Part shown: piece by piece, positions 621 through 5,456 of the stretch
How positions within the stretch are numbered: the stretch's first letter is position 1
How the letters are laid out: every line of letters begins with the position of its first letter
Assembly: GCF_006345805.1 (NCBI RefSeq)
Contig: NW_021829836.1
Location: 1-5,816 of the forward strand
Origin: Octopus sinensis
Lineage: Eukaryota
Length of the DNA stretch: 5,816 nt
Reading direction: 5' to 3'
Program-made: the position numbers and the translations under genes
Notes under the pieces: model-generated
Seen by the model: only the letters and a program-made list of their open reading frames with translations
Database searches by the model: none
What the model was told of the DNA's origin: nothing

Positions 621-719
621 GTTTTTGTTTTGGGAACATCCCGCTCAATACCAGTCATAATCCAGTTTAATACCATCACCTGGATCAATGTTCTGTTAAC
701 AGACTCCACCTGTCTCAAG

Positions 720-729
720 CATTCGAACC
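720..729 (+). repeat. Left copy of putative 10-bp target-site duplication CATTCGAACC
   Basis: Exact match to 1157-1166; the pair abuts the ends of the dimer. Confidence 0.75.
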
Positions 730-947
730 GCCATTCAAGAATTTGGACCTGGAGATCTCCATTTCCAGCGACTTCGAGGGTCATCTCCCAGTGGTGTTGG
801 GCGTCAACGAAGAGCCCTGGACTACAACAAGACGACCAAAGTTTCTTTTTTTTTTCCAAGGTCTGGGGTCTCCCGCCCCTAAGCCCTAAACCATCACCTA
901 ATCACCCTTACCCGTCTTGTTGCTTAACAACAACAACAACAACAGCA
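730..947 (+). mobile_element. ~218-bp short retroelement-like unit, copy 1, with (AAC)n tail
   Basis: About 90% identical to 948-1156 by hand alignment; ends in (AAC)6-AGCA tail (926-947); immediately preceded by CATTCGAACC (720-729). Confidence 0.75.
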
Positions 948-1156
948 GCCATTCAAGAATTTGAACCTGCAGATCTCCATTTCCAACGACTTCGGAGGCC
1001 ACCTCCCAGTGGTGTCGGGCGTCAACGAAGAGTCCTCGACTACAAGACGACCAAAGTTTGGTTTTTTTCCAAGGTCTGGGGTCCCGCCCCTAAGCCCTAG
1101 ACCATCATCTAATCACCCTTATCCGTCTTGTTACTTAACAACACCAACAACAACAA
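948..1156 (+). mobile_element. ~209-bp short retroelement-like unit, copy 2, with (AAC)n tail
   Basis: Starts with the same GCCATTCAAGAATTTG as copy 1; 9-bp stem-loop 1073-1103; imperfect (AAC)n tail; immediately followed by CATTCGAACC (1157-1166). Confidence 0.75.
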
Positions 1157-1166
1157 CATTCGAACC
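1157..1166 (+). repeat. Right copy of putative 10-bp target-site duplication CATTCGAACC
   Basis: Exact match to 720-729; directly follows the (AAC)n tail as expected for target-primed reverse transcription. Confidence 0.75.
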
Positions 1167-2754: not shown

Positions 2755-2921
2755 ACCACTGGTTGACAAACGGTGTCTGTTTGTTGATATCCCTGTAGCT
2801 TAGTGATGCGGCAAAAGTACTGGGATGGATTCGTTCGACTAAAAATTCTTCAAGTCAGTGCCCCAGCATGGCCGCAGTCTAATGACTGAAACGAGTAAGA
2901 GATAAGAGATAAAAAGAAAAA
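2755..2921 (+). mobile_element. SINE family C 3' module (headless, internally deleted)
   Basis: GGTTGACAAAC..., GCGGCAAAA, CCAGCATGGCCGCAGTCTAATGACTGAAACGAGTAAGAG + A-rich tail; matches 3670-3840. Confidence 0.85.
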
Positions 2922-3160: not shown

Positions 3161-3400
3161 TTTTTTACTTGTTTCAGTCACTGGACTGCGGCCATGCTGG
3201 GATCACCAAAAACGGTGACATGCACACACACACACACCACACACATTTATGATAGGCTTCCAGAAAATGTCCGTTTCCCAAAATTTCACTCACAAAGCAC
3301 TGGTCGGTCTGAGGCTATGGTAGAAGATACTTGCCCCAGGTGGGGCGCGGTAGGACTGAACTCGAAGTCACGTGATTGCAAAGCAAGCTTCTTAACCACA
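3161..3400 (-). mobile_element. SINE family C, inverted copy (head lacking first ~15 nt, CA linker, most of the 3' module deleted, terminal motif kept)
   Basis: 3246-3400 reverse-complements to the C head; 3161-3207 reverse-complements to GGTG.TCC.AGCATGGCCGCAGTC.A.TGACTGAAACAAGTAAAA; CA repeat 3223-3245 between them. Confidence 0.85.
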
Positions 3401-3441
3401 CACACACACACACATATATATAAGCACTTATAAACACAATA

Positions 3442-3840
3442 GGCGCAGGAGTGGCTGCGTGGTACGTAACTTGCTTACCAACCACATGGTTCCGGGTTCA
3501 GTCCCACTGCGTGGAACCTTGGGCAAGTGTCTTCTACTATAGCCTCGGGCCGAACAATGCCTTGTGAGTCGATTTGGTAGACGGAAACTGAAAGAAGCCT
3601 GTCGTATATATGTATATATATATATGTATGTGTGTGTATGTTTGTGTGTCTGTGTTTGTCCCCCTAGCATCGCTTGACAACCGATGCTGGTGTGTTTGCG
3701 GTTCGGCAAAACAGACCGATAGAATAAGTACTGGGCTTACAAAGAATAAGTCCCGGGGTCGAGTTGCTCGATTAAAGGCGGTGCTCCAGCATGGCCGCAG
3801 TCAAATGACTGAAACAAGGAAAAGAGTAAGAGTAAAGAGA
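3442..3840 (+). mobile_element. Full-length composite SINE family C: tRNA head + CORE-like block + TA/GT linker + 3' module
   Basis: A box TGGCTGCGTGG (3452-3462), B box GGTTCAGTCCC (3495-3505), ACCTTGGGCAAGT (CORE-SINE-like word), microsatellite linker ~3605-3655, 3' module ending CAGCATGGCCGCAGTCAAATGACTGAAACAAG + (AAGAGT)-like tail. No clear TSD. Confidence 0.9.
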
Positions 3841-3950: not shown

Positions 3951-4050
3951 TATACATGTGTCTGTGTGTGCGTGCGCGTGCGTGTGTGTCTGTATGCGTG
4001 TAAGTATGCATGTGCTTATGTGTTTATGTGTGTATGTGTGTGTGTGTGCT
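3951..4050. repeat. Degenerate (GT)n microsatellite
   Basis: Direct reading. Confidence 0.9.
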
Positions 4051-4200
4051 TGGTTAAGAAGCTCGCTTTGTAATCACGTGGTTTCCAGTTCAGTCCTACC
4101 ACGCGGCACCTTGGGCAAGTGTCTTCTACCACAGCCTCGAACTGACCAATGCCTTGTGAGTGAAATTTTGTAGACTAACATCGTATGGAAGTCCATCGTA
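4051..4200 (+). mobile_element. SINE family C head (same subfamily as 3246-3400)
   Basis: TGGTTAAGAAGCTCGCTTTGTAATCACGTG...GTTCAGTCCTACC...CACCTTGGGCAAGTGTCTTCTACC...GTGAGTGAAATTTTG. Confidence 0.9.
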
Positions 4201-4220
4201 TATGTGTGTGTGCGTGTGTG

Positions 4221-4700: not shown

Positions 4701-4916
4701 TTAGCTTGTCCGGAAAGTTCGTACCGATTTGTAGTAGCTTGCCTTTCGACTTACCGTCCCAGGCACCTCAATTCTGGGAAGAGGGTATTTTCAAGTTAAA
4801 GGAAAGATTGTGCAACAAAATGGTTCATATTTGGTTGATTAAAAATATAATGGCAAGTATTTATTGACCTTTTTCTTTCCTTTAAAAATCGGCACGAACT
4901 TTCCGGACAACCCAAA
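4701..4916 (+). mobile_element. Internally deleted mariner (Tc1/mariner) non-autonomous element
   Basis: TIRs 4701-4730 and 4886-4915 (27/30 complementary), TA at 4699-4700 and 4917-4918; relic peptide FWEEGIFKLKER (4772-4807) then, after a frameshift/deletion, VQQNGSYLVD* (4810-4842), matching the mariner transposase C-terminal pattern F(Y/W)xxGIxxLxxRWxxxxxxxGxY. Confidence 0.9.
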
Positions 4917-5249: not shown

Positions 5250-5456
5250 TCTTATTCTTTATTGCCCACAAGGGGTTAAACACAGAGGACACAAACAAGG
5301 AGAAACTAAGGGATTAAGTCGATTATATCGATCCCAGTGCGTAACTGGTACTTAATTTATCGACCCCGAAAGGATGAAAGGCAAAGTCGACCTCGGCGGA
5401 ATTTGAACTCAGAACGTAACGACAGACGAAATGCCACTAAGCATTTCGCTCGGCGT
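5250..5456 (-). mobile_element. SINE family A, 5'-truncated (A box lost), with 3' tail
   Basis: 5340-5456 near-identical to 1-119; B box 5398-5408; continues into a 3' tail ending GGGCAATAAAGAATAAG. Confidence 0.9.

Follow-up and report, generated by a model that had tools for sequence, protein, structure and literature searches.

Insertion of a short interspersed element (SINE) into the tail of an earlier copy is common, as when Alu elements enter the A-tails of other Alus, and the resulting pairs are also known for Feilai of Aedes aegypti and for other SINEs with 3′ tandem repeats. Certain long interspersed elements (LINEs) are specific for microsatellites, Dong inserting in (TAA)n and Waldo, Mino, Kibi and Koshi in other repeats. 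In molluscs, the tails of the MESC and V-type SINEs consist of (CA)n, (CAAA)n or (CACT)n (PMC4758252). Here we analyze a 5,816-nt stretch of Octopus sinensis DNA (contig NW_021829836.1; hereafter the window), in which positions 720-1166 hold a dimer of two head-to-tail units of ~215 nt, each ending in an AAC repeat, inside a single 10-bp target-site duplication (TSD).

Octopus genomes consist of repeats to about two-thirds, with LINEs (12.9%) and SINEs (11.6%) as the most abundant orders of transposable elements; the recently active LINE families include RTE, Dong-R4, CR1 and L1-Tx1, with Dong-R4 being the most active LINEs in O. vulgaris, and of 900 SINE families with recent activity, 893 are unclassified (PMC13282606). 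An octopus RTE has a 3′-terminal microsatellite (PMC9115989). Elements of this sort abound in the genome, and the unit described here probably belongs to a known kind as an uncharacterised member; it may already be catalogued. Our preferred explanation, which we hold tentatively, is that each unit is a short, non-coding, non-autonomous, AAC-tailed retroposon of the type without long terminal repeats (non-LTR), and that the dimer may have formed through two successive insertions.

Two AAC-tailed units within a single target-site duplication

Unit 1 (218 nt) can be aligned with unit 2 (209 nt) along the whole length of both, in 218 columns, and BLAST computes 88.8% identity over 215 columns, which confirms the original prediction of two head-to-tail AAC-tailed units at 730-947 and 948-1156. 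Counting by hand had earlier given roughly 15 substitutions with some small indels, close to the computed values of 18 substitutions (13 transitions and 5 transversions) and 3 internal indels of 3, 2 and 2 nt. Without their tails, the cores of the two units are 91.5% identical. Unit 1 contains 7 CpG dinucleotides and unit 2 contains 9, with position 69 being TpG in the former and CpG in the latter. The identical 16-mer GCCATTCAAGAATTTG opens both units. The internal junction reads (AAC)6-AGCA-GCCATTC and its border is uncertain by up to 4 nt, as AGCA can be assigned to the tail of unit 1 or to the 5′ end of unit 2. Because of this ambiguity, the claim of exactly identical 5′ ends stands as far as the shared 16-mer is concerned but holds only within ~4 nt.

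The dimer is directly abutted on both sides by a perfect 10-nt direct repeat, CATTCGAACC, again as predicted (720-729 and 1157-1166), and no copy of this repeat lies between the two units. By arithmetic, the chance of finding an exact 10-mer at two fixed positions is ~1e-6. The border between tail and TSD is ambiguous by 2 nt, since CA, the first two bases of the TSD, may just as well be the last two of the tail. One 10-bp TSD, a 3′ microsatellite on each unit and the position of the last tail against the 3′ TSD copy together fit target-primed reverse transcription (TPRT), the mode of non-LTR elements, with the RNA copied into the + strand; tails oriented in this way are a signature of TPRT. 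The anatomy, with a 10-bp TSD and a microsatellite tail adjoining its 3′ copy, fits the non-LTR insertion that had been proposed for the locus.

The units resemble none of the neighboring tRNA-derived SINEs in the window at a significant level, in agreement with the earlier assessment. ARAGORN with default settings called no tRNA in 720-1166, and no Rfam family, ribozymes included, matched this region at E values up to 1. The original prediction also held that the sense strand carries neither an A nor a B box of an RNA polymerase III (Pol III) promoter. For the B box this is correct, as the sense strand of the dimer has none at up to 2 mismatches; a single weak A-box-like site with 2 mismatches does occur in unit 1 at 784-794. 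The T10 run of unit 1 and the T7 run of unit 2 lie at 846-855 and 1062-1068, where they had been placed. A T10 run would stop sense-strand transcription by Pol III. Measured against the definition used by SINEBase (PMC3531059), the units are short (218 and 209 nt, below 700 bp), non-autonomous and non-coding and they end in a simple-repeat 3′ tail, (AAC)n at 926-944 and 1137-1158. The tRNA, 7SL or 5S head with an internal Pol III promoter is absent, and for lack of this head the unit is not a SINE by that definition.

A SINE read from the minus strand, tRNA-like or poly(A)-tailed, was considered and rejected. Relaxed ARAGORN settings returned 3 calls against a shuffle expectation of 0.17. These calls are structurally poor, their places in one unit do not correspond to those in the other, and we do not trust them. 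An element on the minus strand would also place the microsatellite at the 5′ TSD. As a match to a minus-strand SINE module, unit 1 scored 36 (reached by 10 of 500 shuffles) and unit 2 only 23, both in gap-heavy alignments, and this resemblance was rejected as well.

None of the reading frames of the two units shows similarity to a protein or a Pfam family, and no remnant of a LINE open reading frame (ORF) was detected. Six-frame translations of both units found no match among 5.8 billion proteins, a database nearly devoid of bulk octopus ORFs: a six-frame query made from the commonest SINE of the window matched only 4 proteins (3 of them from O. bimaculoides, 72-90% identity), and the ORFs of the window are absent from it too. 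As bulk octopus ORFs are not in the database, this protein search is uninformative for the units. An apparent likeness of unit frame +2 to the N-terminus of mariner transposase was dropped, as neither Pfam nor BLASTP supported it. The terminal inverted repeats of a Mutator-like DNA transposon or miniature inverted-repeat transposable element (MITE) with a 9-11-bp TSD are absent, since neither the two ends of the dimer nor those of a unit are joined by an inverted repeat. Neither AATAAA nor ATTAAA occurs in the scanned region 700-1200.

Both units can form a long-range stem just upstream of the tail (Table 1). The outer 8 bp of the stem in unit 1 are kept in unit 2, where the stem encloses a 10-bp inner hairpin, GGTCTGGGGT / GCCCTAGACC, that is present in the minimum free energy and the centroid folds of the unit. 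The fold z-scores are -1.55 for unit 1 and -2.28 for unit 2, from two sequences and with no covariation. The predicted 8-10-bp stem before the tail resembles the 3′ recognition domains of repeat-tailed LINE/SINE pairs, a likeness that is only suggestive. At the other end of the unit, bases 1-6 may pair with bases 61-66 over 6 bp, a weak pairing seen by eye. Within the units no hammerhead core (CUGANGA) was found on either strand; its only exact match is at 1182-1188, in the right flank outside the units. A ribozyme that sets the 5′ end was left as speculation, with neither an Rfam hit nor a hammerhead core behind it.

The 15 nt directly upstream of the insertion, TCAAGCATTCGAACC, resemble the 5′ part of the units themselves, with 13/15 identical positions to 953-967 and 12/15 to 735-749. 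A 13/15 match was reached by 4 of 154,226 background 15-mers drawn from the window and octopus loci, a frequency of 2.6e-5. The reverse complement of the TSD, GGTTCGAATGC (719-729; also 1156-1166 on the minus strand), is a near-consensus Pol III B box with 1 mismatch, and the head of unit 2 on the minus strand (GGTTCAAATTC, 957-967) is B-box-like with 2 mismatches. The likeness between target and 5′ end could reflect a target preference, a shared tRNA-like T-arm ancestry of both, or chance. That the target is an older, diverged copy of the family is unsupported: a permissive local alignment of the left flank beat 999 of 1000 shuffles but was not robust, a collinear alignment with the empty site reached only 6/300 and was not significant under three other scoring schemes, and nhmmer found nothing. 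The idea that the flanks are part of a neighboring composite SINE was rejected, as the similarity was not significant.

Table 1 Positions of the dimer features and of the tRNA-derived SINE copies in the window (TRF, tandem repeat search).
Feature	Position	Strand	Evidence or remark
Target-side 15-mer TCAAGCATTCGAACC, like unit bases 6-20 (TCAAGAATTTGAACC in unit 2)	715..729	+	13/15 with unit 2, 12/15 with unit 1
Left TSD copy CATTCGAACC	720..729	.	Perfect repeat of 1157-1166; centered on palindrome TTCGAA
Unit 1 body, start GCCATTCAAGAATTTG	730..925	+	91.5% core alignment with unit 2; no tRNA, Rfam or Pfam match
Unit 1 long-range stem of the 3′ domain, 10 bp, just upstream of tail	825..922	+	CAACAAGACG (825-834) / CGTCTTGTTG (913-922); inverted repeat
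T10 run, unit 1	846..855	+	Direct reading
Unit 1 tail, (AAC)6 (926-943) and AGCA (944-947)	926..947	+	TRF 926-944, period 3, 100% match
AGCA, alternatively 5′ extension of unit 2 or non-templated bases	944..947	+	
Unit 2 body, 16-nt start as in unit 1	948..1136	+	Alignment with unit 1; 9 CpG
Unit 2 counterpart of the stem	1042..1131	+	ACAAGACG (1042-1049) / CGTCTTGT (1124-1131)
T7 run, unit 2	1062..1068	+	Direct reading
Unit 2 tail, AAC AAC ACC AAC AAC AAC AA, continuing into CA of the TSD	1137..1156	+	TRF 1137-1158
Right TSD copy CATTCGAACC	1157..1166	.	Perfect direct repeat; adjoins unit 2 tail
Pre-insertion (empty) site, predicted form			...CTGTCTCAAGCATTCGAACCAAATTATCC...
tRNA-derived SINE copies	1-118, 5339-5456; 3227-3416 vs 4033-4220; 1881-1983, 3441-3840, 2849-2917		

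Origin of the dimer

The data show the anatomy of the locus, its octopus origin and a unit that has neither a Pol III head nor coding capacity; RNA-mediated insertion, dependence on a LINE and an order of events are what we infer. In the sequence of steps that we propose, the RNA of the unit would have been copied by the reverse transcriptase of a LINE of the kind that recognizes a specific 3′ end and is itself microsatellite-tailed. The bottom strand would have been nicked at ...GGTTCGAATG^, so that the terminal TG could pair with the CA of the AAC tail, and the RNA would have been copied through to its 5′ end. A top-strand nick 10 bp away would then have led to the duplication of CATTCGAACC. 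The visible TSD would stem from unit 1, which would have landed before unit 2. Another RNA of the family could subsequently have been primed in the (AAC)n tail of unit 1, as the (GTT)n strand pairs perfectly with the tail of the RNA. The target duplication of this second event would consist of AAC repeats and hence be invisible. On the left side of unit 2 stands CAACAACAGCA, which agrees at 10/11 positions with CAACAACAACA at the end of the tail region; this fits a TSD made of AAC, though trivially. We rank a tail-primed second insertion first because insertion into the tails of earlier copies is a common route in well-studied genomes. The divergence of ~9-11% between the units, with its 13:5 excess of transitions, is typical of two members of a family or of aged copies, and the lower number of CpGs together with the TpG at position 69 hints weakly that unit 1 may be older than unit 2. 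The proposal of a short element family whose 5′ terminus is defined presupposes that the two units arose by separate retrotranspositions.

Several observations weigh against two successive insertions of such a family. Neither blastn nor nhmmer with a two-unit profile found a single copy of the unit in ~72 kb of non-gap octopus DNA, which comprises the loci around three annotated proteins, two from O. bimaculoides (L081 and L082) and one from O. sinensis (L083). A multi-copy family is therefore an assumption. The same sample contains dozens of copies of the SINEs of the window; by arithmetic, zero copies in ~72 kb only bounds the family of the unit at roughly <1e5 copies. Nor did this small sample of three loci reveal a LINE partner that ends in (AAC)n or has its 3′ region in common with the unit; the single LINE 3′ end recovered from octopus has an (AAT)n tail. 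As the first insertion did not go into an AAC repeat, targeting of the tail is at best a preference. The G-containing AGCA at the junction is without a specific explanation in the two-insertion model. The 13/15 likeness of the target to the unit's own 5′ end is not predicted either, and none of the mechanisms considered here predicts both copies side by side. Finally, one locus does not suffice to tell sequential insertion from a dimer formed in a single event; tail priming, a template jump, a multimeric RNA and a later duplication all fit the sequence, and the three routes proposed earlier are likewise inseparable here.

Searches elsewhere gave the following results. The window contains no further copy of the unit. 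A k-mer search of the first 400 kb of an O. vulgaris transcriptome supplement did not find the unit on either strand and did find a SINE of the window. Among viral contigs, an 18-mer of the unit had 0 matches and a 16-mer had 80 chance matches, none of which extended; this collection is without octopus DNA and the abundant SINE of the window likewise had 0 matches in it. Metagenome contigs (two scans) and GTDB genomes, which are also collections without octopus DNA, gave 0 matches to the unit. Sequence strings were not found in full-text literature.

A single event could produce the same arrangement if the reverse transcriptase copied the RNA of unit 2 through to the 5′ end and then jumped to the tail of a second RNA of the family, unit 1, leaving one TSD. 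The single TSD without an internal copy is consistent with this, as is the common 5′ stop within ~4 nt, which is expected of a physical RNA end, and AGCA could be non-templated bases that were added before the jump. End-to-end template jumping has reportedly been documented in vitro for the R2 reverse transcriptase, and chimeric retrocopies are said to exist in mammals. However, the two RNAs must have differed by up to ~9%, or all of the divergence came later, and in genomes for which counts of both exist, template-jump chimeras are far outnumbered by tail-directed re-insertions. Nothing at the locus separates a template jump from sequential insertion. We regard the jump as unlikely yet the most probable of the alternatives. 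Less probable still is that a single inserted copy was later duplicated as DNA, through slippage during replication or through unequal exchange, which would make the identical 5′ ends trivial and uninformative about an RNA terminus. It agrees with the adjacent and collinear position of the units, and by calculation a TSD would still be identical at 10/10 positions ~40% of the time at a core divergence of ~8.5%. Short homologies are available as well: unit bases 3-7 share CATTC with the beginning of the right TSD, and AAC is common to TSD and tail. Unequal exchange between the TSD copies would, however, leave a TSD in the middle of the dimer, where there is none, and exchange at CATTC or AAC predicts the junctions tail/CATTC or AAC/CGCC, whereas AGCA/GCCATTC is observed. 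Moreover, duplication ends that match the ends of the element exactly would require a coincidence.

We give little credence to the copying of a multimeric or circular RNA, by rolling circle or repeatedly, as in Penelope-like elements and non-LTR retrozymes. The monomer borders would then be RNA-processing sites, and ~215 nt is a typical unit length for retrozyme-like tandem repeats. Penelope-like elements typically insert as tandems with a bias to microsatellites (PMC8557442) and are active in octopus (PMC13282606), and animal non-LTR retrozymes are tandem repeats that occur as monomers, dimers and multimers (10.64898/2026.07.22.740005). The units, however, have neither a hammerhead core nor an Rfam ribozyme, the upstream unit is not 5′-truncated and so forms no pseudo-LTR, no 30-40-bp 'tail' extension is recognizable at either end, and the clean 10-bp TSD with a microsatellite tail on each unit is LINE-like. 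A similarly small chance is left to the units being two 5′-truncated 3′ ends of an (AAC)n-tailed LINE with the same stop point, for example at a strong stop for the reverse transcriptase. LINE copies are mostly 5′-truncated, and the unit has no recognizable promoter. Octopus RTEs carry 3′ microsatellites, and RTEs are described as the origin of many SINEs (PMC9115989 and its reference 40). On the other hand, it is unlikely that two truncations, each on its own, would end at one nucleotide, and the unit frames are not protein- or Pfam-like while RTE ORFs run almost to the tail, although the protein search is weak for octopus. The least probable reading would be a cephalopod family of promoter-less short retroposons with a precisely processed RNA 5′ end, made at an unrecognized self-cleaving or processing motif, that inserts multimers in one event and prefers targets like itself. 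Such elements would in effect be a hammerhead-less, microsatellite-tailed analogue of retrozymes, and the preference for targets like their own 5′ end is suggested by the 13/15 match at 715-729.

Neighboring repeats and other observations

The window contains several copies from at least three tRNA-derived SINE families (Table 1), some of them composite with internal (TA)n or (TG)n arrays. These families fill the O. bimaculoides and O. sinensis loci, and their matches have a mean identity of 88.8% in the O. sinensis locus versus 84-85% in O. bimaculoides. The 44.7-kb O. bimaculoides locus of one SINE-matching protein has >100 SINE matches in common with the window, and a transcript of O. vulgaris carries the other SINE of the window. 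Together with the protein matches of the commonest SINE, these results identify the window as octopus DNA.

The LINE 3′ end recovered from octopus lies at 5904-6380 of L081 (O. bimaculoides CM046608.1). It is 5′-truncated, with a ~230-nt 3′ untranslated region and an (AAT)5 tail, and its coding remnant is a C-terminal ORF fragment of 77 aa that bears an RPD...D...K-type (restriction-endonuclease-like) motif. Its closest relatives, at 85-93% identity, are on short contigs; further relatives at 66-74% occur in sea cucumber, sea anemone, corals and shrimps, a wide spread for one LINE lineage.

Other features of the window include a MITE-like element at 4701-4915 with 33-nt terminal inverted repeats, TTAGCTTGTCCGGAAAGTTCGTACCGATTTGTA / ...AAATCGGCACGAACTTTCCGGACAA..., which are 88% complementary and 149 nt apart. 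A T-rich run at 1669-1714 (46 nt, ~73% T) follows an unannotated AT-rich stretch and is possibly the antisense A-tail of another retroposon. Five nucleotides downstream of the right TSD, at 1171-1190, there is a perfect 7-bp hairpin (TATCCTC, loop CAGCCT, GAGGATA). Rfam 'miRNA' matches (mir-5014, mir-3149, mir-297 and others) at 2571-2739 and 2174-2251 score below the gathering scores and are artefacts of the (AC)n, (GT)n and (TA)n microsatellites that they cover. Contigs of the ENA assemblies ERZ25067548 and ERZ25073780 (L084 and L085) carry mariner-like ORFs with 50-59% identity to the octopus copy. Neither contig has any of the octopus SINEs; they are not octopod, being eukaryotic contigs in assemblies with prokaryote-style gene calls.

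Comparison with known retroposons

The pairs formed by Alu and Feilai share with the dimer a second copy that lies directly after the tail of the first and a second TSD that is hidden in the repeat. They are Pol III SINEs of known copy number, whereas the preference for AAC tails is deduced here from one locus. With microsatellite-specific LINEs the dimer has in common a tail motif that equals the preferred target motif and tandem arrays separated by the repeat; it differs in that the outer insertion is in unique sequence with a normal 10-bp TSD. Stringent-type LINE-dependent SINEs, such as eel UnaSINE1 with its partner UnaL2 and the MESC and V-type SINEs of molluscs (PMC4758252), are like the unit in being short and non-coding, in a 3′ stem-loop (in the unit a predicted one) followed by a short tandem-repeat tail, in a TSD of ~10 bp and in a variable tail length. 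In contrast to them, the unit is without a tRNA, 5S or 7SL head and contains the internal T10 and T7 runs.

Penelope-like tandems and non-LTR retrozymes (PMC8557442; 10.64898/2026.07.22.740005) resemble the dimer in that head-to-tail copies share a single insertion, in their link to microsatellites and in the short tandem units without coding capacity. The dimer differs from both. Retrozymes carry a type I hammerhead in every tandem unit and the dimer has none; Penelope-like tandems have a 5′-truncated upstream copy, the pseudo-LTR, while both units here are full length with the same start; and the 30-40-bp extension is missing. R2-derived SIDEs are reported to be short and non-autonomous, without a Pol III promoter and with a precise 5′ end (PMC3414825); the unit is likewise short, non-autonomous and without a recognizable Pol III promoter, and its 5′ end may be precise. 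As described there SIDEs are specific for ribosomal DNA and carry a ribozyme like that of hepatitis delta virus, whereas no ribozyme was detected in the unit.

The dimer has no evident bearing on host gene function. If a genome-wide family were confirmed, with a defined 5′ end, no head, an AAC tail and a tendency to form multimers, it would be a clear example among the poorly described, LP-SINE-like non-Pol III retroposons of molluscs. It would help to assign a part of the several hundred 'unclassified SINE' families reported for Octopus vulgaris and would offer a natural system for how reverse transcriptases of the LINE or Penelope type make tandem insertions. As a single-locus duplication or a LINE stub, the dimer would be a matter of routine repeat annotation.

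The nearest described mollusc elements are the LP-SINEs of gastropods and bivalves (PMC4758252). Their heads are recognizably derived from a LINE 5′ untranslated region, whereas the head of the unit has no such recognized origin, and several of them have a poly(A) signal before the tail, which the unit lacks. Like the unit, LP-SINEs are short mollusc retroposons that have no Pol III head and end in a tandem repeat.

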